Source: Gnetum montanum (Eukaryota; Plantae; Gnetophyta). From it: a DNA stretch of 64,000 bases. Below, piece after piece: positions 3,001 through 42,611 of this stretch (position 1 is the first letter of the stretch; each line of letters opens with the position of its first letter). The notes beneath the pieces were generated by a model. The model was given only the letters and a program-made list of their open reading frames with translations. It searched no databases and had not been told where the DNA came from. The stretch covers positions 208,685 to 272,684 of the forward strand of contig MNCI01002615.1 in assembly GCA_015680685.1 (NCBI GenBank), given 5' to 3'. The position numbers were made by a program, and so were the translations under genes.

Positions 3001-6000
3001 GTTCTTGTCTAGCACATTGAGATTCATTAATTGTTCTTTCTATGCTAAGCTTAGGTCAAGGCAAAGATCACAAGCTATCAAAAGTGTACAGAGTCCTGCT
3101 TGAATGGGAAGTGTTGGTAGTTTTTTGTACATAAGCTCATAGGGAGAGTAGCCAATAGGAAGTTTCCAAGTGGAGCAACAACTCCCAAGAGCATCATTGA
3201 GTTTTGTGCCCCAATCCCTCCTATATTTGCTAACAATTCAAGTTAGTATTTTTGTAATCTCCCTATTACTAACCTCTTCTTGACCATTGGCTTGGGGGTA
3301 ATATGAGTTGTCAATTTTTGTTCAACCCCCAAGCATTGCATGAGCTTCTAAAAAGTGGTACTTGTAAAATAATTTTCATTATCAAAATAAGTGCATGTGG
3401 CATCCCAAACCTATTTACAACATGTTTTTGCACAAATCAAGTAGCCATAGAAGATGTGCAATCAATGATGGCCATAGCTTCCATCCATTTGGTGTAGTAG
3501 TTAATAGCTATTATGACGTATGCCTTTCTATTAGACATGGGAGTGATGGAATCCATAAAATTGATGTCCCAAATATTGAAGGGCTATAGTGGTTGGATCC
3601 ATTATTGAGATTCCTCCATATGAGGTGTTATCCCACCATCACATTGGTAGTGTTCATAGGAGTAGATGAAGTGATGGGCATCCCTAGAAAGTGTTGGCCA
3701 ATAATACCTTGCCATGAGGAGCTTAATGGCCATTCATCTTCTAGCATAATGACCCCCAAAAGGGTCCTCATGAGTGTCTTTGAGAATGCATAGTTGACCA
3801 TCATTAGGAATGCACCATTGAACTAGGCCATCGATGCACACCTTGTAAGGTTATCTGTTGATTTCCATGAGGTGTTTTGCCTAGTGAAGAAACTATTGTT
3901 TCTTCTTGTTGTCCCACTCTTATGGCATCTCTTGAGTATGAAGGTAGTTAAAAATGTCATCATACCAGTTGGTTTTGGTGGGAACTTATTCAGGTATAGC
4001 TTCAGCAAAGAGGAGTTCATCAAGAAACTGATCTAAAAGTGAACTCCCCTCCTCTTTGTTATTCCATCTCAACCTAGATAAGTGGTTACCTACCACATTC
4101 TTAGCTCAATCCTCAATCCACATCAATCCATTTCTGTGAAATTTTTTGCCCCAATACAATGTCCTCCTAGACCATTAAGTGGATTTTCTATGAGTTGATC
4201 CTAAGGTTTATCTCCATGCACCATTTTAACACTTGCTCAAGATATTAGAGGGCTTTCTCAAATGTAGCCCCATAGGTGGAGAAGTCATCCATGAAGACTT
4301 TCACCTTGCTACCAATCTTCTATTGGAATATATTTAGGATAAGGAATTGGACTATTGTAGGGGCATTGTATAGGCTAAATAGCATCTTTCTATATACAAA
4401 AGTTCCTGAAGGAATTGTGAATGTAGTTTTATCCTAATATTTATGTGGTATCTAGATTTGGTTATAGCCACTATAACCATCCAAAAAGCTATAATAGTAA
4501 TGCCCAAAAATTGTGCCCAACACTTGGTCCACAAATGGCAAAGGAAAATGATCCTTGTATGTTTCCATATTCAACAGCTGGAAATCAATGTAGACCCTTC
4601 ATTTTCCATCTTACTTTGGCATGATCATGAGTGAGCTAACCCTCACTATCTACAATTAGATAGATGAATCTTGCCTTCAAGAGTTGTTTAGTCTCCTCTT
4701 TGATAATCTACTTAAGCCTAGAATTCAACTGTTGTTACGACTACCTCTTTAGTTTCATGCAGGAATTTGTGCAAATTCAATGCTAGCATATCCTTAGATC
4801 AATTCAAGTCAACTCATGATATGACCAAGCAAAGGTTGTCAGCCATTTGTTGGCCACCTCCAATAGCTTCTTTTTTGTACAAAAGTAAGGTTAGCATTCA
4901 TGATGACTGGTTTTCCATTTTTTAGAAAAGCATATTCCATTTTAGTCGGTAGAGTTTTAAACTCAAGGGGCTCCTATTTGAAGCTCCCAAGGATTTCCAA
5001 CTCTTCCTAATTGGTTTCATCAGGTTCATTAGAGAGATGGCAATGGACTTACTCCAGTTCATTCATGCCTTCAACGTAGGCACTTGTAAGGCTCTTAGTT
5101 TGTTCCATGCACAAGGTTGAACTACTTGCTACTTCAACTATTAGCCACTGGGCATCCTTCTATTTTGTGGTTGTTGTGTATGGGCACCTTTGAACTTCCA
5201 TGAAGTCTATACATTGCTTTCATGCTATAAGTGTGGTACTTTTAACAATCCATAATTTTTGTATGTAGTGGCACCCTATGTTATTATATGCGATGCATGG
5301 AACATGCTTCCTCTCTATCTTCCCAAAGTTATTTTCCTTGGAAATATCCAAGGAGAGGTCTTTGATTCCCAACTGTGCATCAATTATACTTAGCTAATCC
5401 CTTTCCATGACGACTGGGAAGCCCCCCTTATAGTTATCAACACAAATCACTAGGAAGTTGGTAGTATATGACCACCCATAGATGGTGGTCATAATATCCT
5501 CCACTAATCCCAAAGGGGATAGTGATGGACTAATATGCTAACCTAAGATGAATTTTGCTCTTCTTAAGAAGAGGAAGGTTTCAAGCTTTGTACATTTCAT
5601 GTTAGATTATATTGACACCAAAACCTAAGTCTAGAAGAGCCTTGCAAGGCTCATTCCCAATGATTTGAAAGTAAATAAAGGAACTCTCAAGATCATATCT
5701 CTTTCTGGGAAGCTAGCTAGCCTTTATTCAATTAATGACTACATGAGCTAACATTACAGTATGCATGCCAGAAGGAGTTTGGTTTGAAGGAATCTAGAAG
5801 GATGTTCTGGAGGAGAAAGAAGTAGGGTCAGTAGCTACAGGTATTTGTGAGGGCTTGGTAGGATTTTTGGTTCAAAAAAAAAGGTCTTTTTCAAGGCTTA
5901 GTATTTGAACCACTTAACTAATAAGCCAACTATAGTTTAAAAACCCTTCTGATGTTTCTTTGCTATGACTGTGCTAAAATTTCACCCTACATAGATGGAG

Positions 6001-8350
6001 CAAGTGGCAACTGAGTTGAGGATGGAGGTACATGTGCAGAAGGATGATAAGGGTAATAGGAAAATGGTAACTCTACTCTTAGCAATTGTGCTTGATAATA
6101 TTCAAGAGGGTAGTAGTGGTGCTAGAAAGAAGTGTGACTAGAAGAATCACATGGAGAAATGGACTGCTAAACATAATACCTATATAGATCTAGCTACCGA
6201 TAAGGGTATTTTTACGTTGGTGGTAGCATCTCTCATGACTATGGGTGTTGCCACTAGTAGTATTACTCATGAGGTTTATGTGGTGCTCCACTCAAATAAT
6301 AGGCTTGTTGGTGGAACTACCTATAGTTGCCTTGAGGACAAGACAACCTCCTAGGTATTTGCCATTTTTCCAATCTACGATTCAAAGCATACACCTAGGA
6401 TTCTTGCAAGTGTGACATAATTGGGTAACATCCCTTACGATTTTTGTATTAGCATATGTCATATACCATTCATCATCTATTTTAGAATCTATAACTTCTT
6501 CCATTACAGTAGCTTTGCCTGTACCCTTCTGATGAACACATTTATCTTTCTTCATTCTCTTGCAGTCATGATCACTACCTTGCTCTTTGGCCTCCTTGGC
6601 AACTCTGAGGGTAGCTAAAAAAATTTCATCCAAAGGATCCACAATCTTGTCCATCTTGGCTAATATTTCAAAAATAGATTTTTGCATTAGTAAGGTTTTT
6701 CATTGCACCACTTCATCAAGTGATGCATCTTCATCATTTTCATAAAACTAGACCTCCCTTTTGTGAATGGAAAGGTCTCAATTGAACTCCTCCGTAGTTT
6801 TTCTTTTTCCAACTCACCTTCTTCTTTAGACACTTGCTCAATCAACCTTTGGATTTGATGGGCGTTTACCTATGAAAGCCTCCCTTTGGCATAGACCCCA
6901 AGAGTTCTCCTCACTTCTATTTGAAGCCCATTTATGGTATGGCACAACTTCTCTCTTTGAGAATAGTCATGGCCTAGGCATTTGTGTAACAATGAGTAAT
7001 ATCTACCCATGGCAGCATTCAAGGATTCATGTATTCCTTGCTTCCAACTTTGGATCTCCCTTCTTAGGTTAACTACTCAAGAGTACATTTGATACGTATC
7101 ATTGAAGAGTTCAAGCATTGTATTTCAACATCTAATTGAAGTCTATTCTAAGGATTGGTACCAAATTTTAGCCTCCTTAATGAGTGTCCTAGGAAACAGC
7201 TCCAATTTCTTACATTCTTTCTCAACATTTTGTAAGATGCATCCATTATGAAAGGCTTGAAGATGATATCATGGATCTAAATTTTATCCCCCTTTGAACT
7301 TAGGGATATTTTTCATGTCTAATCATTTGATCCAACTATCCTTCATTTTCCTTGTTGGAATCCTTATGGCCTTTGCAATGTTGAGCATGTTTTTAGTTGC
7401 AAGTAGAGGCTCATCATAGTAATAGCCCCTATGATGATCATGATGCCTATGATTCCCTTTGCTATCCCTTCTTTCTCTGTGGTGGACCTCCCTTGATTAC
7501 ACATGTCCTTGGTCTCTATTATTTTAGCAGGATCTGTGATCATATCTATCCCTCCCAATCATCTCCATCATGGTCTTTCCCTCTACGACTTTGGTCAAAG
7601 TTGGAGGAGGAAGATGGTGAGGATGATGAAGATGAAGAGGAAGGAGGACTAGCATCAAAACAGTGCCTACTACTTTCCCTCCTTTGGTCCTAGCCATGAT
7701 CACCATGTTTGTCATTATCGTGATGCTTATCAAGATTCTTGCCTTAACTCCCTTCCTTTGAGGCCCCATAGTCATGAGATCCATTCTCCCTAGAACCAAG
7801 GTTATCTATAGTGAAGTGTAGATTTTGATTGAGGGCCTCTTCCTCAAAGAGAGAAGAAGAGTCAATGTATTGAAAGGTTCATGAGAAGGGGTTCTTCCCT
7901 TCATATTGGCCCAATAAAAATAAGGGATTTGTGAACGTTTTCCTTTTGATGCCTCATAGTGAGCTTTCATTTGTCAATCTTTCTTTTGCTAAGCCTCTAT
8001 GGAATGATAATCATTGTAGGAATGATCTTGCACCTCATACTCAGCATTGAGCCTTATGATACCCATTCTCATGAGATTTTGGAGCAACATCGTAAGAACT
8101 GATCAATCAAGAGGTAACAAAATGTTGTCCTCCATGTTCCTCCACCACCATTATTCATCCTAGTGTAGGATAAAGCTGATATTTGGAACGTATTCATCCA
8201 TATGCATATAGACCACTCTACATTGTTAAGGCATGGGTGGTTTCAGGCCTTCTTGCCTTTGCTGATTGGAATCACCTGTGAATCGTGGTAGAGAATCTTC
8301 CCTGTGAGAAGAATCCACATTACTTCTTGTGAAAATAGTGTGCTTTTGTT
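1..8350 (-). mobile_element. Decayed Ty3/Gypsy (Athila-like) LTR retrotransposon internal region: gag-PR-RT-(RH deleted)-INT, spacer, extra 3' ORF; runs off the left edge
   Basis: Minus-strand remnants in Gypsy order: gag ~7350-6700 (IPKFKG..DP..HL..F; LFPRTL..EAK.WY), protease ~5650-5450 (ALLDLGFGVNII), RT ~4700-4115 (FLDGYSGYNQI, KVFMDDFS), integrase ~3960-2850 (H..PFGGH, YYWPTL). Many stops and frameshifts. LTRs not delimited. Confidence 0.85.
470..1343 (-). pseudogene. Athila-type extra 3' ORF remnant (Transposase_32 / 'putative plant transposon protein'-like)
   Basis: Candidate ATG at 1343 (MVPR...). Manual translation gives PILISSGEWY..PNAIVRIKDINVSYLVKVIS*VLGLLETG..KVEKVYFKIMTYHLNP..(frameshift) KFPVNLP*LIYLKI..ELHFS*LIHKLC. 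This follows the family pattern LVREFY..VRG..I..IN..LG..G / INLG.II / LPFPSLIT.LC. It lies ~1.5 kb downstream of the integrase. Confidence 0.6.
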
Positions 8351-9319
8351 ATTATTATTTTGTTTAATGATTTCAAATTTAAGGTTCATTACAACATTGT
8401 TGGATAAGTTCACTAACTTCCTAGATAGTGCACATAACTAACTAAAGTCCTCAATAGTGGTACTAATGATGAGCAACAAATAGTCCCTACATCCAACCAT
8501 ACAAATCACCAATGTTCACTAAGCGATCTAGTCAAATTTCATAGATTTTAGTTCTCTAAGTACACCTTATCTAGGTAGTGAATCTTAAAGACATGATCAT
8601 TATCTTCCCAGTTCCACTTATGAGGTACAATGGTATGGTTAAGTGTAACTGAGGTATATGATTTGTATCATTTTCATAATTTTCATTTAATTCACCTAAG
8701 TGTTCAAAAATAAAGTAATTAAATGATGAATTAATCTAATAACTAATTAATGCTTTAGACTAATCCTAACACAAGCATCTGTTCCAATCTATGGTACACA
8801 TCCTGAACACATTGCAACGCTACTAGGTTACCAAGTCTAAATGGTACTGGGATTACCAAGTATTAATGTATGCACGAGGTGGTTGTACTTATGTGCATTA
8901 ATTATAAAAATTTAATTAACTAATTAAGTGCATCAAATTAAATTTCATGAATAGTAAATGTTTTTTAAGTAAATATTATGCTAAATCCAAGTTTTGCAAG
9001 GTTTATTAAGAAAGCTCATCTTTGTTTTCATTCACACTAAGGTGTCCAAGTACATCAGTGCTTGAATAAAGATCCATACACTTCTCAACTCCTACTGTAG
9101 GTACTTAGAAAATATTCTAACTCTAAAATGAACAAACTACAAGGACTTCACTATGCTACTTAACAATGAAGTTCATAAATGCAATAAATGCACACATTTA
9201 TATAGGTAAGACTAGACACTCTATTGACACATATGTGTCGATGCATCAAATCATGCATCAATGTAACAGCATTGATGGGTACACAATGATAGGATCATGT
9301 CAATGTAGTCAAATCCACG

Positions 9320-12120
9320 ATGACTCATTAGCTACGATGCTCAAAAAGGCAATAGATCTTGGTAGTCCTATGATTTCTTGCATGATTCATAATAGGAATT
9401 TTCATCATATGTTATTGGATTTAGGGGCTAATGTAAATATTATGCCATTTCAGATTTAGCAGTCATTGGGTTACGATCATATTAGACTTAACGATATTAT
9501 GATTTCCTTGGCTGATGGATTTACCATTTATCCAAAAGATATTGTTGAGGATATATTATTTTAGGTAGATAAGGCTTTGTACCGTGTTGATTTCATTATG
9601 CTAGATTATTATACATCTTCATTAAATAATGTTTATCCTTTGATTTTAGACAAGCTTATGTTGGTAACTATGGAAGTGGTTGTTTATGTAAAAACTAGAT
9701 TAATGACTTTAACATTTGTGAATATGAACTTTTTAGTCAATTTATATAACCTTGATAACATATTTCATTTTGATGAGCTTAATATGGTTAATGTTGTGGT
9801 AGCAAACATGGTTTCTTCAGAACTATACGATTAGGATGAGACATATTAGCTATCAACATTGAAAGAATACAAAGTGGTAACTATGGATGATCAAAGGAAG
9901 TTCATATTTACTCAAGTGGAAGATACTTTGGATGGTAAGGATTTATTTAAAGTAGTGACTTATTCTTTTGTTGCAAGTGATGAGGAGGTAACTTTAGATT
10001 TAAAAGAACTTCCTTCTTACTTGAAATACATTATGCTAAGAGCAATAAATCCTTGATTATTAGTTTAGGCTTAACTATTGATCAAGAACATATATTGATA
10101 CATGACTTTTGGATCTTACGTAGGGGATTTTTCCATCCATCATTCAAAATCATGTTCATTTAGAGGCTAAGGCTAGACCACAACAACAACCATGTAGGAG
10201 TCTAATCCCAACTTTGAAATAGGTGGTAAAAGATGAACTTTTGAAATTTTTTCAAGTAGGTATTATTTATTTGATTTTTGATTCTAAATGGGTTATTCCT
10301 ATTACGATTGTACCTAAAAAGTCTATTAAGTGGTGAGTTTGTATTGATTTTTATGAATTAAATAAATGGAGAAGCAAGGATCACTTTCCACTTTCATATT
10401 TAGATTATGTTTTAAACAAAATTTAAGGACATGAATTTTATTCTTTTCTTGATGATTTTAGCAATTATAATTAGGCTTCAGTTGCCCCAAAAGATCAACA
10501 TAAAACAGAATTTATTGCACTATGGGGAACTTTTGCATTTCAATGTATGCCCCTTAGGCTATGTAATGCTCTTATTATATTTCAAAGGGCTATGACATCT
10601 ACTTTTTAGGATATGATTGATTCATTTCTTGAAGTTTTTATGAAAGATTTTTCAATATATAGTGATTCATTCTCCGATGCCTTGTGTCATTTTAAAGTAG
10701 TCTTACATAGTGTATTGATAAGGGTCTTAGATTATCTTGGAAGAAGTGTCATTTCATGGTCTCTTCAAGTGTTGTGTTAGGTCACATTTTAAGTAAGAGG
10801 AAAATTTCATTAAATCCTGAAAAAATAAAATTTATTTTCCATCTTACTCCTTCCACTAATGTCAAAGGTTTGCGTGCATTCTTGGGAAATGCTAATTCTA
10901 TAGATGATTCATTAAAGCTTTTTCATTGATTACTCAATCATTGGTAAACTTATCACAAAAAAACATTATTTTTAAGTGGATTGAAGATTGTCAAACTACA
11001 TTTGAAAACTTAAAATCAAATATTTCTTCAGTATCAATATTACAGGGACTTGATTGGAGCAAAGATTTTGAGCTTATGATAGATGCCTCAGATTTTGCAA
11101 TTCAAGCTATATTGTATTAGTGTAAAGATAATATTCCATATGTTATTTATGATATTTCTAAGACACTGACCCCTACTAAAATTAATTATACTACTACTAA
11201 AATGAGATGCTAGTAATTATATATAGTTTAGATAAATTTCACCATTACTTAATTAGTTATTGGACTATAGTATTTACTGATCATGCTCCTATTAACTATT
11301 TTCATAATAAATGAACTAAAAGTATAAGATTAATTCATTGATTCCTTTTGATGTAAGAATTAAATTTGATGATTTGTGATAAGAAAGGATCCAAAACTTT
11401 TGTGCAAATAATTTTTCTAGGTTGAAGCATAATACAAATTTGGAGACATCTCACACTTTTAATGATTCATTTCTGAATGTGCAGTTCTTTCTTTGTCGAG
11501 CTAGGATTGTTATTTTTAAGGTTCAAGATCATTGGTATGTGGATATTACTAATTATTTAGCTATACGCAAACTACTAAAGTCTTGGACTAAAGGACGATA
11601 ATAGGCCTTCACCATCAAGGCACAATTGTTCATTTGGAAAGATCCATTCATCCATAAAATTTGTAAAGATCAAATCATTAGATGATGTCTACCGGAACAA
11701 GAACAATAAGAAGTAATTTCTTTCAACCATGATAGAGCATGTGGAGATCACTTTGCAGGTAAGAAAACTTCATAAAAAATCCTCAATGCTGGTTTTTATT
11801 AGTCTATTTTATTTAAAGATACTTCTATGTATTATAAGAGATGTAATCAATGCTAGCAAATAGGGGGATTCACAAGATGCCAAGACATGCTATTGTTACT
11901 TCTCTCGATGAAGTGTGAGCCCTTTGATTATTGGAACATTGATTTTTAGGTTCTTTTCCTTCAAGAAACACTTGTAAGTATATCTTAGTTTCCGTTGATT
12001 ATGTCACCAAATGGATTTTGGCAAAAGAAACTAGTCATAATGATGCAAAAATGGTAGTTAGGTTCTTAAGAGAAGACTTAATACCATGCTTTGGTAACCC
12101 ATGGACCCAAAGTAGCTATC
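9320..12120 (+). mobile_element. Decayed Athila-like Gypsy pol, 5' part (PR-RT-RH-INT N-half), interrupted at 12120
   Basis: DLGSPMISCMI..MLLDLGANVNIMP (protease); FLDDFSNYN / GTFAF..MPL.LCNA (RT); ELMIDASDFAIQAIL (RNase H); integrase up to FGNPWTQSSY at 12120. Confidence 0.9.
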
Positions 12121-14646
12121 TATTAATGACCATTTGGGACATGATTGTCAATGTTGGAAGCCTCACAGTCTCATGGCCTTGGGAAGTCATGGGATCGAAG
12201 GTGTTCTTCAAACAGGGTTTAGGTGCTTGCTAGTCTCTAGCAACACCAAGAATCAAATACTTCTAGATAGACTAAGTAGTTATGCAAATATGTATTTGTT
12301 ATTGTAAATTTTGAAATGGTTGTGTGGTATATAAAATTTTAATTGGCTATCATAAAAGAGATTCAGCTAACTTTGTTAACTATGACAAGTTGTTGGAGAT
12401 TCCTATTTTGTTTAATCACTTAGTCTCTATGATCCTTATAATACCTACTTGTAAAAACTAAAATTTTGCAAAAATATTTGAGCATAATTATACCAATCTA
12501 CTCCTAATTTTCCCTAGAGAGAAAGTTCCACAAGAAAATTAGAAATAGAGTAAGATTTAATGGACTTAAAAAGAGAAAGAAAAGAAAGTAGAATTGTGTG
12601 AAATATCGAATATGTAAGCAAGACAAATTAACATGAGAAAACACTTCATAATAAATCTATTCCTAATTCAATAACTATGAATTGTTCAAAACTTTTTGAG
12701 CACAACAAAAATTTCATACAGAGAATCTCATTAAACTACCAAAAATCACTATGTAAACGATAAAGTATGAGTCTCTATTTTAGATAGTTAATAAATGTCA
12801 AAGATTGCATTCAATAGAGATTTCAAAAAAAAATTTGACAATTTCTTAATTGAAATACCAAGGGAATAAACTTTTAAAAAATAAAGAAGCTATTTCAGTC
12901 CCATGAAAATTCCAAAGCTTTTCCTAGAACTCTATGCTCAAAACATTATAATTTTGTTAAGACATTACTATTAAATTTCTCATAAGGCTTTCAACAACAT
13001 GAGCTCTTCTATGGAAAATCTTAATAGAAGTCTAATATTGCACAAAAATAGGGCTATAAAAGTAACCTAGAACAAATCCAAAAATTAAATTGCAAGAATG
13101 ATACTATATAAACCATTAGCTAAGCAACTAAAACAAAATGGGAAGAAATGAACTCACAAGATTACAACAAAGCAACCAGATTAATATCTTTAGCAATCCA
13201 TCATACAAGTAATCTTCAAATATCCTTTTCTTCTAAGTCTCCCCTCCTTTTTCTTCACTTCTACCCTTGAAGCTCTATTTATAGTGGCTTCATCGTTTTT
13301 ACAATCATCATGAGAAGTTAAGGGTATTACAAATATTTAGGAATATTAATTTATAATCACCTGAGAAGTTATAACTTCCATGAAAGTTATGATAAATTTG
13401 AGAAATATATGTCACGGTTGGCAAGTATCCTCTTGGTAATCACAACTTCACAAATATCAAGGAAATTAAGTTATAACTTCCATATGAAGTTATATTTTTT
13501 GAAACACTTTAAATGTTGTAGAGAATAAAGGTATGTTTTCCACATGTCTACTAAATTTATCCCTTACAATTTCAAAAAGTAATTTATATGTAGCATATCT
13601 CTTGGAGTCAAATTATGCCTTACCATGAGGTTGTGCTAAAATTTAACCTTTCTCATCATGAAGGTTTTTTTCTTTAAAATAAAATTTAAATATTCCTAAT
13701 AAAATAAGCATAGATCAAGGATTAAAAATAGAATAACCATTTCAAAATATAATTCTTCAGAGAAGTTTCAAGAACACAAATTCGGGCTCCAACTACTACA
13801 CCTCAACAATCTCCACAACAAACATTTGTATTGCTTTGGTTTGTTTTTATCCACATAGCATTGTGTATGCTACTCTACACCTTATTGCTCCTACCATTGG
13901 AATATCTTTTCTATGTGCCATTGGTCCATCTTCCCATATCAAATATAGAAATGAGGGTTTTGAAGATTGCCGCATTGCATCTTGGATGTTATTCAGGGAG
14001 AAAGTGACAACTATGGTAGCTTGTGCTCTAAAGTCTCTAATCTAGCATCAACAATGTTCATACCATACATGGAGAAAATGTGAACTAGCTTCTCTACTAT
14101 GGTGTTAACACCTATGAGCAGACTTGGTTGAACCAAGGGTTTCTATCATTGCCACTTTTAGGAGTAATTTCATTATTTCCTTGATAGTAGTTATACTTCA
14201 AATCGAAGTTAGGGTTTGGTTGCCATGAAACATATTCCAAATCAATGTATAAAAAATATTCATTACAATGATTTTTTTTGTTCATTATTGTTGGCGACCT
14301 TTTGGGACACAACCGCCAACGAGTATCCTCGAATAGGATTTAGGTGTCTGCTAGTATCTGGAAACACCAAGGCCCAAATACCTCCAAATAGACTCAGTAG
14401 TTAATGTGAGTATTTGTGTGTGCTGTTGTGGTGTGTGGTTGTGAAAATGAAATGATTGCGTTGTGTGTAAACTACGAATGACTTATCTTAAAGAGATTCA
14501 GCCAACTTTGCCAAGTACTGTGAGTTGTTGAGAGTTCCTATTTTGTTCAATTACCTAGTCTACGTGGTCCTTATAATACCTACTTGTAACAAATAAAATT
14601 TTGTTAAAACATCTGAGCACAACTCTGTGAATCTACTTCTAATTTT

Positions 14647-14700
14647 NNNNNNNNNNNNNNNNNNNNNNNNNNNNNNNNNNNNNNNNNNNNNNNNNNNNNN
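14647..14700. other. Assembly gap (54 N)
   Basis: Run of N. The homologous stretch in the 24774-27851 LTR is ~260 bp, so the real gap is probably longer. Confidence 0.97.
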
Positions 14701-15362
14701 TACGAGACTCCATTTTGGCTAGATAATGGACGTCAACAATTGCATTCAACAGAACCTTCAAAAGACTTGACAATTTCTGATTGAAATACCACAGAGATTC
14801 ACTTTAAAGATAAAATAATGCTATTCTGGTCCCATCAAAATACCAAAGACTTTTTGAACCCTCTTGACTATTGAATCGTTCAACGGCATGACTACAAGCA
14901 GAGGCTCTCTTACAACAATCCCAATAGCGGTTCTTCTACGTTGCACAATAACCAAATTGACTACTAAAATGCTCTTAAGGATTTTCATACACAAGCGCTT
15001 CTATGGCAAAATTTTAATAAAAATTTTCTATCGGGCAACAAGAACAATAAGAGCAATCTAAAAATCCCAAAATTACTTGCCAAGGATGATACTATCTAAA
15101 CCACTAGCTAAACAATTTAAACAAAATAAAAAATACAAAAAACATAACTCACAAGACCATGACAAAGAGGCTGAAATATTTTCTTTAGCAAGTCATCTTA
15201 CAAGCAATCTTTCACAATTTCTTCTTTACAATGCTCTTCTCCCAAGACTCAAAGTGTGTCTCCAAGTGAAAGCCCAAGTGCTAGCTGGTAACCTTCCAAA
15301 GTGTGATGTATCAAGTGTCTTCTCAAAAGTATGATGTCTCTATTCTTCTTACCCCTGAAGCC

Positions 15363-15370
15363 TTTTTATA
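15363..15370 (-). promoter_or_regulatory. TATA box of the solo LTR promoter
   Basis: Minus strand CCTTATAAAAAGGCTTCAGGGGTAAGAAG. It sits at the same position as CTATAAATAGAGCTTCAAGGGGTAGAAG in the host LTR (~13260-13284). Confidence 0.6.
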
Positions 15371-16195
15371 AGGTTCAAAGGTAGTTACATATTCAAAAAT
15401 ATCTTACCTAACTTCTCTCCCAAGTAACTTGGCCAACAAGTTAGGAAGTATTAACTTAGGAAGTTAGGAAGTTAGGAGAAATATTGCAAATATTGCCTTT
15501 GTGAAAAATAACTCCAATAGCTCCGTATAATTGTTATTTTCATTTTAATTTATTTATAATTTTTAAGTTTTGAATACTATTGAAGCCCTAGTAATTTTTT
15601 GAACAAGGTAATGGTAAAAAGATAATATAATATCCACCTTGGTGTAGATGTTGGTGGTAGCGGTAGCTAATCCGTATAAATTTATATAAATAATTTATCT
15701 GCACTTGCACCCATGTAAAATTTTTTGCCGAATGTGAAGACGCCAGGCCTGGAACTGCTAGCAAATAATTCCAAATTATCCCGCCCTGCCAAAATCATTA
15801 TCAACTGTCACCACGAGAGAAGGCTCTGCCGCTGCATCCGGCATCATTCTCGTGTGGTGTTCATTTGCTGAAGAGCGGAGGAGAAGCATCTTAAAAATGA
15901 TGTACTGAACACATGATCCTGAACATAGGGTTTCAGTTGCCTAGAATTTGTTTTGTTTTTCCCCAAATTCGCTAAGGGCTTCCTGCATTTTTTTTTCCTC
16001 CACGAATGTATCAACATAGTTTTTAGAAATCACATTACAGAATCATCAATCACTTCTACTAGAAATCCACGATCAATTCAGATGTTCCCAAAACATTATA
16101 CAAGAAGCCAAGTTCCAAATTTTTAGAGCTAAAAACGCTTGATTCTAGGATTGGCCAGGTCTCTGACTATGAGAAACTTTCTTCATCTTATGGGA

Positions 16196-16543
16196 TTACT
16201 CACCGCCGAGCTGCTGCTCCTGAGCGAGCGCCCACTGAAACCATTCATCGACAGCATCCATGAAAGCAGGATTGAGCGGAATCATCATGATGCAGAACTC
16301 GCGCTGTGACAGAGCACCATCGCCATCAAAATCACCCTCCCTGAGCATGACCTGCAAATCAACGTCGAAGAGCGAATCCAGACCCAGAATTATAGCATTT
16401 CTACGTAGACTCTCCAACATTATCAGTCTCGTCAGTCTCATCACAGGCTCTACCAGAAGCTTGAAGCACTTGCACATCTCCGCCATGAACTCGCCGGCCC
16501 CTAATTTATCCACCATCATAGGAAAATAATCCTCGAACTCCAT
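16196..16543 (-). CDS. KIC/PBP1/KRP1-family single EF-hand calcium-binding protein (115 aa, intronless), inside a solo LTR; possibly a decaying captured copy
   Basis: MEFEDYFPMMVDKLG..EFMAEMCKCFKLLVEP..LESLRRNAIILGL..MLREGDFDGDGALSQREFCIMM.PLNP matches the plant KIC/PBP1 family pattern (FED.LP.M..KL, ESLRRN..LG, EGD.DGDGAL.Q.EFC.LM.RLSP). ATG at 16543, stop at 16196. EF loop DFDGDGALSQRE is intact. Confidence 0.85.
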   Translation of the reverse strand: MEFEDYFPMMVDKLGAGEFMAEMCKCFKLLVEPVMRLTRLIMLESLRRNAIILGLDSLFDVDLQVMLREGDFDGDGALSQREFCIMMIPLNPAFMDAVDEWFQWALAQEQQLGGE

Positions 16544-17883
16544 GGCTTGCTCAGACCCTCCAAAAATCCTCCGCAACTTCACAAGAATTTCCTCTTCTCG
16601 TAGAGCTTGAGCAGGAGGAGGACGAGAATGAGAAATGCTAAGAGCTTTCTGTGTTAAATAACCGAGGAGAGGAGTGCAGTTGCCAAAGAAGCAGCGAAGA
16701 AATGCGAGACTTGTGCAGAGAAAGTGGGGAGAAAGAGCAGGGCGTATGAATGCAGTTGAGAGAGGAAACTGCACAGAAATTTGACTACTGTAGCGTAGGA
16801 CTTTTTTTTTACTGTTCTTCTTCTTCTTGTTGTTCCTCCATTATCTTCTTTATCATTTTGAAAACATCCACTGATAATTTCCCCATTTTTTTATTCATAT
16901 AATCTATTGATTTTAATTTTTGAATTTTCATTTCCAGTTCTCTTCTCTTATTCTTTACCAGTATCCAAATGATCAATTCCTGAATGTATTTCTAACAATG
17001 AAGAATTCCTTGCTTGTAAATTGATTCACCATTGGCACATTATCTCTTGCAATCTTCTATTTACTGTCTTTCATATATGAATTATTTCCACCAATAATAT
17101 TATGGTCTCCCCTAGATCCCATACCAATAGTATAAAATAACACATTTACATTCTCCCACTCTTATAAAATAACACATTTACACATTGAATCTTACTATTC
17201 CATGAAATGGCCAAATGTGCCAACAATTATTATATATTTATTTGTTATTCTAAGATGACTTCTTATCTTGGATTTCCCTTCTTTTTTCTTTCTATTTCTA
17301 CCTTTACTTGTGTGGTTCATAGTCATTTGATCAGTATTATTTTTGTATGGATTATTTCTATCTTTCTTAGCTATTATTACCTTGTAAGCAACCCTGCTAA
17401 CCATGAACAATCCTAAGTATGAGAACCTTTAACATTTTCCCTACTACTTGAACGTTGTAACATCTTCAATATGTTATATTATTATCAAATACTTGATATG
17501 CTTGTGTAAATCCATCCTGTATAGAGAATAAAATACTATGTGCATTCCACAAATTTAATAATGCAGATGTAAATTCCATTATGGAGTCCCATAACATTTA
17601 CACAAGTTAATTCCAAATATTACATCCTTTGGCTTGTTATTAAACTTCCATAAATTCCATAATTAATACCCTTGATTTTCTATCTTGAAAGTATGAACAC
17701 TTAAGCCAGAATGGTGACACCTTAAAACACTTTCTATTCATTTTCCTTTCTACAACATTCATGATTCATTCATGGTATGCTAGTATATTATCTTCCAATC
17801 ATATGTAAAATTTAATTTTCCCAATGCTATCTAAATCATCATCTTGAAAGTTTTCTCCATCAAATGGCATATATATGACAACA

Positions 17884-17903
17884 TTTCACACCCTCTTCTT
17901 TGC
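17884..17903 (-). other. Polypurine tract of the Tat element
   Basis: Minus strand GCAAAGAAGAGGGTGTGAAA immediately precedes the TGTTGTC start of the 3' LTR. Confidence 0.75.
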
Positions 17904-19193
17904 ACATTAACAGGGAAACATAATTTTATTGGAAATGTTCTTTTTACATAGAAAAAAAATTCTTCCTTGAGGAAAACTTCCATCAAACTTAAGATTTAAT
18001 GGAATAAAACCTCACACTAACAAAGCTTAGGAACTATACAAATGAATTTTTATAGAAACTATTCTATGGGTCGAAAGAGAATAGTTAAAGTAACACTTTT
18101 AGGAATTCTCATATTGAGAGTCCTTTCATATGTTATCTCAATTATGATAAGTGCTCTTCTTTTCTTTTCTTACCTAGTTGAAGCCTCAACTTGGCCTTCA
18201 CCTTTATCTTCCAAAATTGTTTTTGTCTACTTTACATCCATTTCTTTAGCTTATGATTTTTTAGGTTCTTCCCAATTAGATGCTTCTGTGTCTTAAGACA
18301 TAAAAGCCTCTCCCCAAGAATCATCTCTACTAGACTCTCTTTGATATTTAGCTTGAGTGTTACATTCATGGAAGCTACCCCAAACATTGAAATGTATAGA
18401 AATTCCACTAGTAAAAAATCTAAACTCATATGAAAGCCAAAGTAGGAAAGGGCTTTCACTTGATTCTCCATGGGCAATTGCCTTACAATAGGCTCTCAAC
18501 ACATGTTTTGGTTAACATCCCATGATATATGGGATAAATGGCCTTCTTACTACTCTTTCTCCGAGAATCATCTTTCTACTTCACACTCAAACACCTCACT
18601 TGCTTTCTCCACTTAATTCTTGAATTGAGAAATGATGCAATCCTAGCAATCCAAATCTCTTTTTATAGTGTAAAGAAACTTTGAAACTCCCACCAATTTC
18701 ACTAACCAACTTTGCCACTTTGCCAAAATTAATTATGTTTCTATCATTATACAATAGGCCAATTCAAATTCCACTATTTGGTTGTTAAAATTAATTCACC
18801 ACCAAGTTGTTATCTAACTATCACTTTCATTTACACTCATCATAAGAAATGATTACTTAGGATAATATAAATTAAATATTTTTAAACTAATAGTTTAACA
18901 TATACATGTTTTTTTAAATATTATATAGACTCACCTAAGCATACGTATAGGATATTTATGTTATAGTTAAATATGACATTAGTCTATACTATTTGTTAAA
19001 TATGCTACTACAAAGTATATATATATTAAATAAAAATTTATTATTTACTATTATGTATATTAAATATTATATAATTACACACACACACACATATTACTAT
19101 ATTAGATACATGCATTAATTGATATACATAGATTTAAGTTATGGGCAATTGCCCAAAATAATGTTTTATATGTAAAACATTATATGGAAACTA

Positions 19194-22100
19194 TCACTCT
19201 ATCCCATCAGGCATCGATAACTTGTATGTATCTCCAAGTAATTGTTTCTTGATCTGAAATGGACCAATCCATACTATTGAAAACATATTTAGCTTCTTCA
19301 TATTCCATAATAATACTATATCACCGACTTTAAAAGCTCTCTTCAAAGCTTTTTTTATCGAACCACCTTTTAACTTGAGAAGCATTCTTTAATAAATTAT
19401 CTTTAGCTCTATCCATTTCAGCTTCTCTTTTGATGAGAAAAGTCATGAAACTTTTTTCTTTATTAGTTTTCTTGCTATACTTTTGCACAAAATATGATGC
19501 TAAACTTATAATCTTGTTTGCGATTCTAGCAAGAAACCCATAGACTAAATCATAAATTGAAGTTCCAATAGCCTTTTTAAATCTAATACAATCAATCCAT
19601 AATGCAGATTGCAAATAATCAATCCAATTTCCTATATTTCCATCCATTAACTTCTTAATGTAGCAAATAAGCATTTTATTTGTAGATTCAGTTAAGCCAT
19701 TTTCTTAAGGATAATAATTTCAAGAAGAAAATAGGAAGATGAATTTTTCTGATGCCCATGTTATAAATTCTTCAGATTGAATGGCAAGTCCATTATTGGA
19801 TACCAACACTTTAGGTAGACCAAATAACTTAAAATCTAATCTTTCAAGAACTTAACCACATCTAATGTTAAACATTTCTTAAAGCCTTTGCTTTAGACCA
19901 TTTAGTAAAATAATCAATAGCTATGAGAATAAACTTTTCTCCTACTCTTGATGGAGTAATTATACCAAAGAAATCTAAGTCCCATTGTTGAAATGGTCTA
20001 TCCACTATTATCAGTTTTACAGGAGCTCTAGTCATTTTGACCTTTAGTTCATGAATTTGACATTTGTAACATCTTCGAACTTTCAAACTAATATCTTAGT
20101 ACATAGTAGGCCAATAGAAACCATAACAAAGTATATGTTGTAGAGTGGACTTAGAAGATTCATAAAATAAATTGGAATGATCATGAAATTTATCTAAGAT
20201 CATATCAATTTGATCATTTTGAATACATTCCAATAAAATTCCTTTGAAATCCTTTCTATGTAAAACCCCATATTTAACCACAAATTTATTTTCTCTTTCG
20301 AAGAAAGCTCTCTTTTGACTTGTAGTTAAATTATTAGGAACTTTTTGTGTATCAGGGAATTCTAGAATCTCATCATACCAATTTCCTTCATGAGTCTTAA
20401 GCACACATACCTCATTTTCTCTATCCATTAACTTGGCTAATCCCATTTCTTTAATGGTTTTACATATTTCTAAAAAAAATCTAAAATTTTGCAGCATTAT
20501 GAGCCACTTTCCTCTTTTCAATCCAATTTCATTTTGGGCTAAGTATTATTTAACTGAAACCTCTATTAGCATAATGTGAACTAATGAGCTTTCCAAATAA
20601 TACTTGAAATACTAAAGTGCCTTAATAACTATGAATGGTTGTTTCTCTAAATTTGAATAATTAAGCTCTAAACCTTTCAATTGATATCCAAACAATTCAA
20701 TCAATTCATCTTGACCTTCATCTCTTTGAGTTAAAATAGTAACAACTGAATCATTTGAAGTAAAATCATATAACCAAAAGTCTTCTTTCAATTTTTTCTT
20801 TATCAAATATGGAGCTTCTTGAATAGCTTTCTTAATTTCTGCTAAGGCGCTCTCTGATTCTAGTGTAATCTCTACTAGGACATCTTTCTTTAGCATATGC
20901 ATCAAAGGTCTAGTAATTTTAGTGAATCCAAGAATAAATTTCTTAACGAAACTTATCTTCCCAAAGAAAGATCTAAGAGACTTTTACTTGTGGGATGTTT
21001 GATATTAAATTTGAGATTTATCTATAGCAATTCATTTTTGACAAATTAAGTGGCCTAATAAACTTCTAGATTTAACCCCAAAGATACATTTCTTAGGATT
21101 TAATGAAATACCATACTCACGACATTTGTCAAAAACTTGTTGAAGATAACCAATAACATATTCCCTCCTTTTTTAAAAGCCAATGAAATCATCCAAATAA
21201 ACTACAATGAACTTTTCTATTAAACCTTTAAAGGATAAATTCATTACTCGTTGAAAAGTAGCTCAAGCATTTGACAATCCAAATGGTATTTTTTTGATAA
21301 GAAAAACTTTCCCATTTGGTGAAAAATGGTGTTTTATGTTTATCACCCTTATCTACCATGATTTGATTATAGCTTGCAAAGCCATCTAGGAAATAATATA
21401 ATTGGCAACTAGATACTTTGATCAACATCTCATCAATTCTAGGAAGTGGTTATTTATCCTTTTCTGAGGCTTCATTTAAATTTTTAAAATCCATACAAAG
21501 TCTAATATCACCATTCTTCTTTCTTGCTAGTACAAGGTTAATAAGCCATGTAGAATATCGGATTAGATATATGTTTTAGGCTTGTAATAACTTTTTGATC
21601 TCAGCTTCCATAGCTAGCTCAAATGATGGATGAAATTTTTTTTATTTTTGTTTAACTATCTTACAACCATTTATGAAAGGAATCTTATGTGTCATCACAT
21701 CTTGTCAAAAAGTATTAAGATTATCATAAGACCAAGTAAAATTTTCCAAATTATTTTTCAAGAGTAATAGTATATTTTTCTTGAAACTAAATAGTTTTCC
21801 TTTGTGACATTTAATGTCTTTGGCATCTCGAAATTCACTATTTCATAAACTTGATCATCTAGATTCTGTACATCTTTTTTGGTGAGCAACGTTTTGCCAA
21901 ACTCATGTTCATAATCAATAACTTTTGGGGGAATGAAATTTCTCTTAAACCTTGATGCTATTTTAGGTATAATTTGACCTTTAAATTATTGCTTCTTTTT
22001 CATAAACCTGAGTATTTGATCATCATCTTCGAATTCTTGTAAATGTTTTATGTTATCTTGTACTAATGGCTAATGTTCTTTCTCAATCATTACACCTTAA

Positions 22101-24648
22101 TAACCTTCTATCCTTTTCACATCTAATGTTGAAGCTACCTTTGCTAAGTCATCTACTATATAATTATCTTCTCTACCTATATGTTCTATTTTGTAGTGAT
22201 GAAATTGCTCAAGCATTCTATAGACAAACTATTTATAGGATCGTAAGAATGAACTCTTTAGTACACAATTACATTTAATTTATTCACAAACTAATCTTGA
22301 GTCTCTCTTTATGGTGATTACCTTGATTCTTTTTTCCAATGTTGTTTTAATTCCAATACTTAGAGCTTCATATTTGGCCTTGTTGTTAGTACAAGGAAAC
22401 GATAGATGAATTGCCTTGAATATTTTTGGAAAATCATCTTTTACTAGAACTACTCTAGCTCTTTCACCTTTGGAGTTACATGAACCATCAAAGTACAATT
22501 CCCAATTGCTCTCATCTTGAGATTCTTCTTTCTCCAAGTTATAAATTTTTTGAAGTGTGCAAATTTTGGTTTCAAAAGCTCCTGTTTCAACAACCTTGTT
22601 CTTTCCATTTGAAGTAATGTTCTCAACCATCAATAGTTCACTATATATGTAAATTTGATTTGGTTCCTATTTCCAAGGTAGCCACATATGTGAATAATTT
22701 GTTGATATATAACTTAAGAAATTCTGACTCTAAATTTCACTCAACAAAAGACTATGTGAATCTAATATATCTGCCACTTGAATAGTTACTCTACTTTCGA
22801 TACAGGGTTCAAAAGTGATTTCTAATAGAACATTGGAAAGTTGACTCACAATCTTTACTCTACTTTTGTCCACTTGAACAATCTTTTTATTTGATTTTTC
22901 CATAATCATACCAAGATTTTTGCACATAGATAATGGCATCATAGTAGATGTAGCTCCAAAATTGACTAAACAATTGTGAGGATACTTGTCTTTAAACTTC
23001 ATTGTCAATAGAAAAGGAGGAGCTTCCTTATCAAAAGTACACTCATAACTAGTTTTTGTTATCTTATCCATGTTGGATATATAGCTTAACTCTAAATCTC
23101 CTACTTTCCTTTTACCTTTAATGAACTCTAAAGCCTTTCTTTATGGATCTCCTATCTATAGTAATTGATATATGCTAATATTTTCCTTAACATGTTTAAC
23201 ATCTTCAATCAAATCATATTCTTCATCTCCATAAAAACCTAGTTTCTTCATCCATTTATTTAAAGACTAATTTTGAATAGTTTTCTCTACTTGATCTTCT
23301 TTACTTTTATTTTTCTCTCTTCTACTTGATTCAAAACCAATTCTCTTAGTAAATAGATCAGAAATAACATTTGGAGGCCTAGACGTAGTTCATCTTTCTT
23401 TTGATCTTAGATTATATCCATTTTCTTCATTATTGTCACACTTCTCATCTGATGATATATCTTCTTCAAAACTTGATATAGTAGAGGTATCACTAGATCC
23501 ATTGTTAGAGGATTTTCTTTCATAATGAACACTAGATAACTCATCATCAAATCCAATATCAAGGAAGTTAAACATAGCAAGATCACTTTCATCCTCATAT
23601 TCTACTAACTTAGTATCTTTATGCTTATATTTTTTATTTTTCTTTTCTTCCTTGATTTTAACTTTTGCCAAAGCTTTTTCTAGTTTCACTAATTTGTTGG
23701 ACAAGTCTCTCATTAACTATCCTTTTTCATATTCTTTACTTTCCGACTCTTGCTCCATCTTAAGATAAGATGGTCTCGGTAATGCTTTAAGTTGAGAAAA
23801 ATCTTGCATAGGAATTATCATTTTCTCTTCTCTTTTTTAAGTTGTGATAATTTCTTCATGATTCAAATTCAATTATTTTTCTAACTTTATAGCTTCACTA
23901 AAGTAGTCATTTAGTGTTATCAAGTTTGGAGTTCTCCTTAATCAAATTGAAATATTGGGATTCACAGCCTTAAGATAAATATCTCTAAGAAATTCATCTA
24001 ATGGTCTATATTATCTTTGAAAGAGCCCACAAATTCTTTAAAACTTAATGTTGAAATCTCTAATAGACTCTTTAATTCCTTGCTTAGCTTGTACTAACGC
24101 ACAATACAATTACTATTGATCTAATTAATTGCCAGATTAGGCTAAGAAAAGACTCTTCATATCATCTCAACTTGTGATACTATTGCTTGGCAAGTTTGAA
24201 TACCAAGTCTGGGCCATATCCTTTAATTTGTCACAAGTAATCTACAAGCTTGATGTTGATGTTGAACATTGGCATGAGGTAAAGCTAACTCAAACATGTG
24301 GATGTATTCTTCAGCAAAGTAAGCTTTTCCAAGAATAAAAGGCTTAGGAAAGTATTTATAAACTACCTTAGGAACATTGTTGTAATTTTGAAATCCTAAT
24401 GGTGTAACTCTTTGCCAAGGATTTTCCATCCTATTAGAAGTCATTTTGATCATTGAACTCTTATGTTTCTTTAACTTTCTCTTATGGACTAATAAACTAG
24501 ATAAAAGGGGTGACTTTCTTATCTTTCTAGTTTTTAATCCACTACTTGTTCCAAATTTAAAAACCTTATTATGTTCTTCTTCTGATGAATAATCAAGAGC
24601 TTCTTTGGAACCTTTGAAATATTCCAAACTATCAGTATGTTTGGTCAT
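19194..24648 (-). pseudogene. Tat gag-pol: gag, protease, additional RNase H, RT, RNase H/tether, integrase with GPF module
   Basis: ORF fragments: 24223-24648 gag; 22730-23071 PR (PPFLLT..NCLVNFGATSTMMP); 22280-22633 aRH (WELYFDGS..TNNKAKYEAL); 21228-21428 RT (FLDGFASYNQI); 20612-20905 RH; 19330-20521 INT (PFQQWDLDFFG, AIDYFTKW); 19194-19385 WIGPFQI. Confidence 0.92.
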
Positions 24649-24749
24649 TAACTCAAACTAGTATCTAATTTCTTAAACCCTTCTGGCAACAAAGAACCAT
24701 TGTTGTGCTAGGACCATTAGGCTTATGAACTTACAAGATGAATTTTTAG

Positions 24750-24766
24750 CCATCCTTCTAGCATCA
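24750..24766 (-). other. Putative primer-binding site (decayed)
   Basis: Minus strand TGATGCTAGAAGGATGG lies 7 nt after the end of the 5' LTR and looks like a decayed TGG-starting PBS. Cognate tRNA not assigned. Confidence 0.55.
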
Positions 24767-24773
24767 AAAGACC

Positions 24774-27700: not shown

Positions 27701-27851
27701 TCTATTCATTTTCCTTTCTACAATGTTCATGATTCATTCATCATATGCTAGTAGATTATCTTCCAATCACAAGTAAGAATTAATTTGCCCAATGCTATCC
27801 CAATCATCATCTTGAAAGATGGCTTCATCAAATGGCATATATGTGACAACA
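24774..27851 (-). repeat. 5' LTR of the Tat element (3078 bp)
   Basis: Plus-strand termini TATTGGCGACC...GACAACA. Homologous to 12121-17883 and followed by the TSD CTATC. Confidence 0.92.
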
Positions 27852-28490
27852 CTATCATGGCACACATTTTGTTAATGATATAATGGAGAAATTTCTACAC
27901 AAAATAAGAATTACACATCATATTGCTACTTCCTATCACCCTTAATCAAATGGTCTAGTTGAAAGTATGAATAAAGAAATTAAAAACGTTTTGTAGAAAG
28001 TTGTAGGAAAGAATAAAATATATTGATCTTATGGATTACCTAATGCATTGTTGGCTATTCATACATCATATAAGTCATCTCTTAGCTTTACCCCATATAA
28101 ACTAGTATTCAGTAAGCAATGCCTTATTCATTCTTCAATATAAAATAAGTCCTTTCAAATGCAACATCAATTTGAATTAAACTGGGACTCATGTCTTTTT
28201 GCCCATTTATTTGCTTTAAATCATTTAAATGAAGATTGTACGCATGCTCTAGAAAGGCAATGTTTGTATAAGAAACAAATGAAGATGTGGCATGATAAAA
28301 ACATTATGTGAAAGCTATTCTTAGAAGGTGATTTAGTATTATTATTTAATAATATGCTTAAGAATTGAAATGGAAGGATCCTTTCAAAGTTATTAAGATC
28401 TTAGGTAATGCTACTATTAACATCTCTAGACTTGGTAGTTCCGAGTCTTTATGGGTGAATGGTAAACAACTTAAACATTATTTTGAATAA
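27852..28490 (+). mobile_element. Continuation of the Athila-like integrase split at 12120
   Basis: Removing the insert and one TSD restores FGNPWTQSSY|HGTHFVNDIMEKFL..THHIATSYHP*SNGLVE..NKEIK..TPYKLVF..GPFKV..VNGKQLKHY. Confidence 0.9.

Positions 28491-42570: not shown

Positions 42571-42611
<41 letters not shown>

Follow-up and report, generated by a model that had tools for sequence, protein, structure and literature searches.

A decaying copy of a KIC-type EF-hand gene within the U3 region of a probable Ty3/gypsy-type solo LTR

The window, a 64-kb stretch of DNA, contains a complete, old LTR retrotransposon with the gene order of gypsy elements, one LTR of which is split by a second insertion (Table 1). 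The RNase H, RT-RNase H, and integrase-like ORFs of this host element all lie on the minus strand, and a purine-rich tract is found beside its 3' LTR. LINE copies were also found in the same 64-kb window. The sequence that splits the LTR is a discrete insertion with ends TGTTGGC and GCCAACA and a copy of ATTAT on each side. The duplication of ATTAT, together with the empty paralogous site in the host element's uninterrupted LTR, shows that the inserted sequence entered as one unit. The tips, the ATTAT pair, and the empty site all agree with an earlier, sequence-only reading of this DNA, in which the insertion was bounded by LTR termini and one target-site duplication pair. The insertion shares 72 to 78% identity with the LTRs of the host element over about 920 bp, plus both tips. 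We assigned it to the minus orientation because the homologous host element has its pol ORFs and purine tract on that strand. An exact-match contig covering 16320 to 16498 had a depth of 7.87, compared with 6.1 and 7.82 for the unique flank contigs (the N gap at 14647 to 14700 was unread), which argues for a single copy of the LTR at this locus, as had been proposed. Taken as a whole, the explanation that we favor, and consider probable, is that the insertion is a minus-orientation solo LTR from a Ty3/gypsy-type family of very high abundance and that it sits inside the 3' LTR of an older element to which it is related.

Table 1. Positions of the host element, the solo LTR, and the gene-derived segment in the window.
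Feature	Position	Strand	Remarks
Complete old LTR retrotransposon (host element), gypsy gene order	12121-27851	minus	Target-site duplication CTATC at 12116-12120 and 27852-27856
Host-element LTRs	12121-17883; 24774-27851		First split by solo LTR; second 3078 bp
Solo LTR, TGTTGGC...GCCAACA	14289-17225	minus	2937 bp assembled, probably about 3.1 kb
Target-site duplication ATTAT, 5 bp	14284-14288 (left); 17226-17230 (right)		Single ATTAT at empty paralogous site
Empty paralogous target site, single ATTAT	27050-27054		In host element's uninterrupted LTR
Family-constant promoter-to-end core (TATA box, presumed R and U5)	14289-15480	minus	Summed depth 1.3e5-1.2e6
N gap in LTR core	14647-14700		Flanks collinear with sister LTR; equivalent sister interval 258 bp
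TATAAAAA, likely LTR TATA box	15363-15370	minus	Read from sequence; 826 bp downstream of ORF stop
Mid-copy U3 segment	15481-15987	minus	Depth about 2,700-7,600
A9 run (sense), 3' edge of gene segment	15988-15996	minus	Poly(A) remnant or junction repeat
KIC-type host-gene-derived segment (leader, coding region, trailer)	15997-16801	minus	805 bp; GC 0.45-0.54
ORF, 115 codons, KIC/KRP1/PBP1-type single EF-hand protein	16196-16543	minus	Stop 16196-16198
9-bp in-frame tandem duplication GAGACTGAC/GAGACTGAT	16422-16439	minus	Adds 3 residues, visible in protein alignments
A9 run (sense), 5' edge of gene segment	16802-16810	minus	
AT-rich mid-copy U3 segment, between tip and gene segment	16811-17124	minus	Depth 2,700-13,000
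LTR 5' tip, family-constant	17125-17225	minus	Depth 60,000-72,000

RNA reads on the promoter-to-end core of the LTR came from many thousands of copies and from both strands. At the opposite end, the first approximately 28 bp of the 5' tip are homologous to the tip of the sister LTR, and reads from other copies leave position 17225 into unlike letters. A second GC-rich island (15689 to 15900; GC 0.42 to 0.51) lies within the mid-copy U3 segment next to the core, and a family search of that segment matched no family.

The ORF in the gene segment encodes a single EF-hand calcium-binding protein of the KIC/KRP1/PBP1 type. It matched the Pfam profile EF-hand_8 (6.6e-9) and aligned over residues 2 to 109 with residues 21 to 125 of Arabidopsis KIC (KCBP-interacting Ca2+-binding protein; PDB 3h4s_E) with an E value of 1e-28. 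Relatives named KRP1, KIC-like, and PBP1-like are 44 to 54% identical to it. The EF-hand loop, DFDGDGALSQRE, is canonical and intact, and the invariant loop columns of the family alignment are kept. These results bear out the earlier description of a complete open ORF of the KIC/PBP1 type, preceded by a CT-rich leader upstream of its ATG and placed in the sense of the element, in the U3-like part, with the TATA box downstream. The 3' edge of the gene segment is 627 bp upstream of the TATA box.

The edges of the GC-rich gene segment are apparent from the GC profile and are each marked by an A9 run, and these are the LTR's only A/T runs of 8 or more. The two runs would suit microsimilarity at the junctions of a template switch and the target duplication left by a LINE-type insertion equally well, or they could have arisen by chance. 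RNA reads of the expressed paralog described below cover 16029 to 16713 without joints; KIC-type genes are not known to contain introns. We propose that a region of a KIC-type transcript comprising the leader, the whole coding sequence, and the trailer would have been taken up once, most likely via RNA. Reverse transcriptase may have switched to a co-packaged mRNA during the copying of U3. Alternatively, a LINE-type retrocopy may have inserted into an active element, within the U3 of its 3' LTR. By either route, the copying of U3 into both LTRs in every cycle would multiply the cargo with the LTR, raising its number to somewhere between tens of copies and about 150, with at least two related species carrying it. 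We regard as possible but doubtful the version in which a LINE made a processed KIC retrocopy that duplicated an A-rich target on entering U3, in the 3' LTR of the active element, and was passed on to all progeny LTRs. The segment looks like a transcript of full length with a terminal A run, the flanking A9 runs are identical, as a LINE target duplication at an A-rich cut site would leave them, and the window holds LINE copies; however, the A run behind the trailer does not exceed the upstream run in length, and a separate tail is absent.

Summed contig depth, which served as a proxy for copy number and is not itself a copy number, was 237 to 1,150 over the gene, compared with about 7 for single-copy pieces (approximately 35- to 160-fold), and reached approximately 20,000 to 170,000 times the single-copy value in the LTR core. 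The depth profile was alike in a second, related species (organism B). The gene segment has the lowest DNA depth anywhere in the LTR, and by summed depth the gene is present in approximately 1 in 1,000 LTR cores and in about a tenth of the nearest sub-lineage. Because its depth is so far below that of the core, a small sublineage alone carries the gene. The sequence-only reading had taken the near-equal lengths of the solo LTR and the sister LTR as a sign that the gene is integral to the LTR. This argument fails, since the U3 of the sister LTR shares no sequence with it beyond approximately 28 bp of the tip. Found in so small a fraction of the LTR cores by summed depth, the gene is not integral to the family. 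The other part of that claim, that the gene is multiplied by the LTR, fared better. The gene is multi-copy, and the share of the DNA depth that carries the letters derived in the window copy varied among sites, being about 0%, 25 to 75%, or about 100%. Such nested sharing indicates copying of copies, and it fits propagation with the LTR and not a private later insertion. Variation among the other gene-segment copies includes an 84-bp deletion.

We therefore infer that the gene was co-amplified with the LTR in other copies. In the contig data, no contig joining the gene segment to LTR sequence in another copy was seen, nor was a full-length element of precisely the solo LTR's family whose two LTRs both carry the gene. 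The former result, along with the roughly 10-fold rarity of the gene segment relative to the adjoining LTR parts, would be expected if the segment had joined this solo LTR after integration and the multi-copy signal came from independent, scattered retrocopies of the same mRNA. We consider this scenario quite improbable. Independent retrocopies would each begin with the letters of the parent, whereas about all of the DNA copies have in common four silent changes relative to the expressed gene, and several derived nonsynonymous letters of the window copy occur in 25 to 75% of the depth, which points to copy-of-copy descent that includes the window copy.

Among the 222 reads of an oligo-dT library on a 4.1-kb stretch, none was at least 99% alike to the window copy. 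The oligo-dT reads over the gene instead formed one haplotype with 8 to 10 differences per read, and a stranded library showed sense-only RNA over the gene. The source of the RNA is one paralog that is 5 to 10% different from the window copy. This expressed paralog, distinct and conserved, is presumably the parent gene. Compared with it and with 94% of the other DNA copies, the ORF in the window stops approximately 17 codons early. The ORF also carries the 9-bp duplication and departs from the family at the nearly invariant residues L7, G18, L19, G26, V85, R89, and S91. Each of the 17 coding transitions has changed a G/C of the expressed paralog to A/T in the window copy; 9 are synonymous, 7 are nonsynonymous, and 1 creates a stop, compared with 34% synonymous expected without selection (P = 0.12).

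Given the early stop, the 3-residue duplication, the altered residues, and the lack of an RNA read at the 99% level, the window copy is not a working signalling gene. Our verdict is that it is a decaying passenger in U3, most likely a retrocopy, and is not detectably transcribed. That the LTR-borne ORF could be a working extra KIC paralog, under selection and driven by the LTR or by a promoter carried along with it, is very hard to credit. The frame is open for 115 codons, the EF-hand loop is intact, and a simple pairwise dN/dS of the window copy against the expressed form is about 0.2; however, the one-directional change from G/C to A/T in a GC3-rich gene explains the low ratio, which does not depart from what is expected without selection (P = 0.12), and the early stop, the changed residues, and RNA without an exact-match read all oppose it.

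Position 14646 at one edge of the N gap matches 25163 in the sister LTR, and 14701 at the other edge matches 25421. Family reads enter the gap carrying sister-LTR letters, with loose ends at 14625, 14646, and 14701. Probably about 250 bp, and not the stated 54, is absent at the gap. A mis-join at this point, which had been raised as a way in which an ordinary gene might have come to lie here, is not what we found, as both sides of the gap are collinear with the sister LTR. An artefact in which the gap brings together pieces from different repeats, or conceals a full element's internal region, so that the gene in a solo LTR would be illusory, is similarly far-fetched. The gap does lie within a very-high-copy repeat, where scaffolding is error-prone, and its stated length of 54 differs from the 258 bp found in the sister LTR. 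However, the gene is 1.5 kb from the gap and contiguous with the right LTR end and its target duplication. The two flanks of the insertion adjoin each other at the empty paralogous site, the LTR sequence is collinear at either edge of the gap, and the exact-match depth equals the single-copy depth.

Gene capture by LTR retrotransposons is already known, with cargo that normally is described as lying between the two LTRs. A position in U3 has different consequences: the element keeps its coding capacity, the cargo is doubled with each insertion, and the cargo survives when the element is reduced to a solo LTR. The presence of a complete small gene in U3 means that whole transcripts, beyond fragments, are transportable. 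The outcome at this locus is a decaying pseudogene family and not new functional genes. Such copies inflate the apparent sizes of gene families in giant plant genomes, and cross-talk with the parent gene through small RNAs is something for which they are natural candidates. A bolder extension, which we think unlikely, is that this abundant gypsy-type lineage takes up host mRNAs, some of them whole genes, at one fixed U3 site that serves as a cargo bay, so that every insertion doubles the cargo and solo LTRs retain it. Under this reading, small RNAs from the tens of silenced KIC copies would act on the single expressed parent, setting up an epigenetic conflict around a calcium-signalling gene that several related species share.

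Coding sequence in U3 is familiar from retroviruses. The superantigen (sag) ORF of MMTV lies in the retroviral U3, and there, as in double-copy retroviral vectors, reverse transcription copies a coding sequence carried in U3 into both LTRs. MMTV sag functions as a viral gene and has an expression route of its own; the KIC ORF, in contrast, is a decaying passenger without sign of expression.

In the giga-genomes of gymnosperms, massive capture of exon pieces by transposable elements, including Ty3/gypsy elements, has been described, with the captured pieces methylated, mostly silent, and possibly in epigenetic conflict with the donor genes (PMC13477047). The cited part of that survey counts genome-wide overlaps, a level at which a fixed U3 cargo site or whole-gene cargo is not resolved. 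Also related are the chimeric LTRs generated by template switching, such as the BARE-2 LTR with Wis-2 sequence and the long Veju TRIMs, in which foreign sequence entered an LTR through reverse transcription and spread as a subfamily (PMC13317346). The foreign part in those chimeras is another transposon or of unknown origin, whereas here it is a host protein-coding gene.

LTR-mediated retroposition is known from maize Bs1, from surveys of rice, sorghum, and maize, and from Drosophila and vertebrate cases, with short shared sequence at the junctions (PMC5131818, PMC13317346, PMC7264820, PMC2774510, PMC3726574). The locus described here resembles these cases in having host-mRNA-derived sequence inside an element, in the sense of the element, with secondary rounds of copying. 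Cargo inside an LTR upstream of the promoter is not described among them. Their cargo lies in the internal region or replaces it and is usually a fragment; here, a whole coding sequence with its leader and trailer lies inside the LTR, upstream of the promoter.

The minus-strand stretch at 14289-17225, read from sequence alone as a solo LTR carrying a host calcium-sensor gene, begins with TGTTGGC, ends with GCCAACA and is flanked by ATTAT on the left (14284-14288) and right (17226-17230). It sits within the left member of a long direct-repeat pair (12121-17883 and 24774-27851). The right member, hereafter the sister LTR, runs without interruption (...GTTAATTAT TATATATTT...) through a single ATTAT at 27050-27054, and this paralogous empty site identifies the 2937 bp as one inserted unit with a 5-bp target duplication. 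Three regions of the insertion match the LTRs of the surrounding element: 14289-15211 aligns at 72-78% with the first ~1,050 bp of those LTRs in plus coordinates, which in element sense is the promoter-distal R/U5 end; the sense 5' tip TGTTGGCACATTTGGCCATTT matches the host LTR tip TGTTGTCACATATATGCCATTT; and the last 32 bp are homologous to the host LTR end. These matches identify the insertion as a minus-oriented LTR belonging to a related family. Nothing in the sister LTR corresponds to the part at 15212-17200, so the similar lengths of the two LTRs, which had been taken to mean that the gene is integral to the LTR, carry no weight. An Rfam search of 12000-18000 gave no match, and metagenome scans using one exact gene pattern and one pattern of the conserved LTR core returned no matches.

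Together the long repeats form the LTR pair of a single complete and old minus-strand element. They are 82-88% identical to each other, and a CTATC target duplication (12116-12120 and 27852-27856) bounds the element. The LTR starts were set at 12121 and 24774 on the basis of this duplication and of the 32 terminal bases homologous to the solo LTR. A purine-rich tract, AAAGAAGAGGGTGTGAAA in sense, adjoins the 3' LTR. The internal ORFs, all of them minus-strand, follow the gypsy order (gag-like, protease-like, RNase H / RT-RNase H, integrase-like), and the interior is degenerate, with ORFs of at most 141 codons. Between the protease-like ORF and the RT-RNase H part there is one RNase H-like ORF (PF00075, E=2.6e-4); its position upstream of RT is odd for the polyprotein order, and judging from sequence it may represent an additional RNase H or a nested fragment.

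An assembly gap of Ns interrupts the conserved core of the inserted LTR and raised two alternatives to a gene-bearing solo LTR. On the sister LTR, base 14646 corresponds to 25163 and base 14701 to 25421; the two sides are thus collinear with it, with ~258 bp expected where the assembly has 54. Reads from other family members run past the left gap edge into CCCCAGAGAAAGAG...TTCCACAAGAAA, matching sister LTR 25166-25190, and at the right edge family reads likewise continue as the sister LTR. Over 16320-16498, one contig agrees with the window in every base; its depth, 7.87, is in line with that of unique flanking contigs (6.1 and 7.82), indicating that the gene-bearing LTR sequence is present once at the locus. 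This single-copy depth argues against a full-length element collapsed at the gap and for a solo LTR. A mis-join placing an ordinary gene here, which the sequence-only reading had allowed for, is rejected in view of the collinear gap edges and by the position of the gene, 1.5 kb from the gap on the same unbroken stretch as the insertion's right end. Elsewhere in the window, a long C run containing a single N (42612) sits inside a 639-bp-spaced direct repeat.

Layout of the gene-bearing LTR, in sense order, and positions of other features of the window
Feature	Coordinates	Strand	Sense order
LTR tip	17225-17125	-	1
AT-rich stretch	17124-16811	-	2
A9 run	16810-16802	-	3
805-bp GC-rich segment (GC 0.45-0.54): CT-rich leader, ORF, trailer	16801-15997	-	4
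A9 run	15996-15988	-	5
Stretch holding second GC-rich island	15987-15481	-	6
Core, with TATAAAAA at 15370-15363	15480-14289	-	7
ORF, 115 codons	16543-16196	-	
9-bp tandem duplication	16422-16439		
Second GC-rich island	15689-15900		
Hypervariable spot	15269-15351		
N gap	14647-14700		
Host element	12121-27851	-	
RNase H-like ORF of host element	22280-22633	-	
C run	42550-42640 and 43200-43268		
Direct repeat around C run	42034-42333 / 42673-42972		

The ORF within the insertion matches Pfam EF-hand_8 (6.6e-9) and, over nearly its whole length, Arabidopsis KIC (PDB 3h4s_E, E=1e-28). Its relatives, named KRP1, KIC-like and PBP1-like, come from angiosperms and a lycophyte and share 44-54% identity with it; the predicted product is thus a single EF-hand protein of the KIC/KRP1/PBP1 type. 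Searches of two large protein libraries gave no relative above ~54% identity; the protein of the host lineage itself is therefore missing from them. In the alignment the EF-hand loop is intact, and this copy deviates at the nearly invariant residues L7, G18, L19, G26, V85, R89 and S91. The tandem duplication appears as a 3-residue insertion in alignments with KIC (PDB) and with the family.

Two A9 runs bracket the gene segment. They are the only runs of at least 8 A/T in the LTR, and across all 64 kb of the window the plus strand contains just ten T runs of at least 9; because such runs are rare in both, this bracketing is unlikely to be due to chance. The motif TATAAAAA lies downstream of the ORF, in agreement with the earlier placement of the gene upstream of the likely LTR promoter and in element sense. 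As read from the sequence, then, this LTR carries a host-gene-derived segment in sense, 5' of its likely TATA box. Transduced genes are reported to lie usually in the element's sense (PMC7264820), and the segment here has the same orientation. The U3 part also holds a second GC-rich island (GC 0.42-0.51, summed depth ~3,000-7,000), possibly an older captured piece. A Pfam search of eight other open frames in the U3 part found nothing but a weak MT-A70 C-terminal match (15685-15807, E=0.22), for which PDB sequence searches gave no support. Just 3' of the TATA box the LTR family has a hypervariable spot, where many contigs from both species omit 64-83 bp and have differing short replacement sequences.

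Reads from an oligo-dT RNA-seq run (X19) cover 16029-16713, but none of the 222 reads placed anywhere on 13700-17800 was at least 99% alike. Over the gene these reads form a single haplotype with 8-10 differences per read. This expressed form carries the family-typical residues L7, V9, A11 and E12 (reads EDYLPVMAEKLG) and V85, R89 and S91 (reads FCV..RLSP). At the stop of this copy, the RNA haplotype and 94% of the DNA depth have a sense codon, which leaves this copy ~17 codons shorter than other forms. In a stranded library (X16), every gene read came from the same strand, in agreement with minus-strand RNA. These results demonstrate that this copy is decayed, with no detectable transcription; the RNA reads probably come from its parent gene. 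LTR core reads of the stranded library (14659-15206) were mostly opposite in direction to the gene reads, a sign that family members may be transcribed in antisense or by read-through.

At every one of the 17 coding transitions the expressed form has G/C and this copy A/T, and five further transitions in the leader and trailer have the same direction; no change in the reverse direction was found among the differences listed. Such one-way change would be the signature expected of methylated-cytosine deamination in silenced repeats. A simple pairwise dN/dS between this copy and the expressed form is ~0.2, a value we rejected as a sign of constraint since every transition is one-directional in a GC3-rich gene. 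Under G/C-to-A/T change alone, 34% of changes are expected to be synonymous; the observed 9/17 is no different (p=0.12), so evidence of constraint on the copy is absent.

Logan contigs from two related organisms, A (X1) and B (X6), were aligned to 13700-17800 with a likeness threshold of 90%, and the depth (~7) of contig pieces identical to the window was taken as the single-copy reference. Summed depth is not copy number, and the following ratios to single-copy are orders of magnitude only: LTR core, 1.3e5-1.2e6 (roughly 20,000-170,000x); LTR tip, 6-7e4 (~9,000-10,000x); stretches flanking the gene segment, 2,700-13,000 (~400-1,800x); ORF 5' half and leader, 520-1,150 (~75-160x); and ORF 3' half, 237-431 (~35-60x). 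The profile was alike in both organisms. To an order of magnitude, summed depth puts the gene segment at some tens to ~150 copies; most LTRs of the family lack it. A variant with an 84-bp deletion (16124-16207), which removes the stop region, was seen at about ten copy-equivalents in each organism.

Differences from the expressed form are shared among the DNA copies in a nested fashion. Four silent differences (16256, 16272, 16502 and 16581) are common to nearly all DNA depth; several derived letters, including non-synonymous ones at codons 7, 9, 11, 28 and 85, are common to 25-75% of it; and those at codons 12, 91, 98 and the stop are rare or private to this copy. The segment is thus multi-copy, with nested shared derived letters indicating several rounds of copying from earlier copies, a descent to which this copy belongs. 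Because this copy arrived here inside an LTR, an LTR retrotransposon is the simplest vehicle, and we infer that the gene is linked to LTRs in other copies as well; among the contigs placed on 13700-17800, none was seen bridging gene segment and LTR in another copy. The proposal that the LTR family amplified the gene fits the multi-copy, nested segment but does not extend to most family LTRs.

A single capture event would account for the segment, with subsequent propagation since U3 goes into both LTRs at each cycle. Perhaps the likelier route of capture is template switching, in which reverse transcriptase would have jumped at an A run onto an mRNA packaged alongside and later returned, as modeled previously (PMC5131818, PMC13317346). 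Alternatively, a LINE-type retrocopy might have inserted at an A-rich site in the U3 of a 3' LTR.

That LTR retrotransposons capture host genes is established from Bs1, from surveys of rice, sorghum and maize, and from LTR-mediated retroposition in animals (PMC13317346, PMC3726574, PMC2774510, PMC5131818), and massive exon capture is described for gymnosperm giga-genomes (PMC13477047). In these accounts cargo lies between the LTRs or in place of internal ORFs, and we found no cargo site inside U3 in the literature consulted on such capture; in the solo LTR described here, by contrast, the cargo is within the U3-like part. BARE-2 and Veju have foreign sequence within their LTRs, but not host genes (PMC13317346), whereas here it is a host gene. 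Beyond these systems, the present locus has a small gene in its entirety as cargo; the window also contains a related, complete element to which the identity of the LTR can be anchored, and reads provide evidence of amplification, decay and lack of expression.
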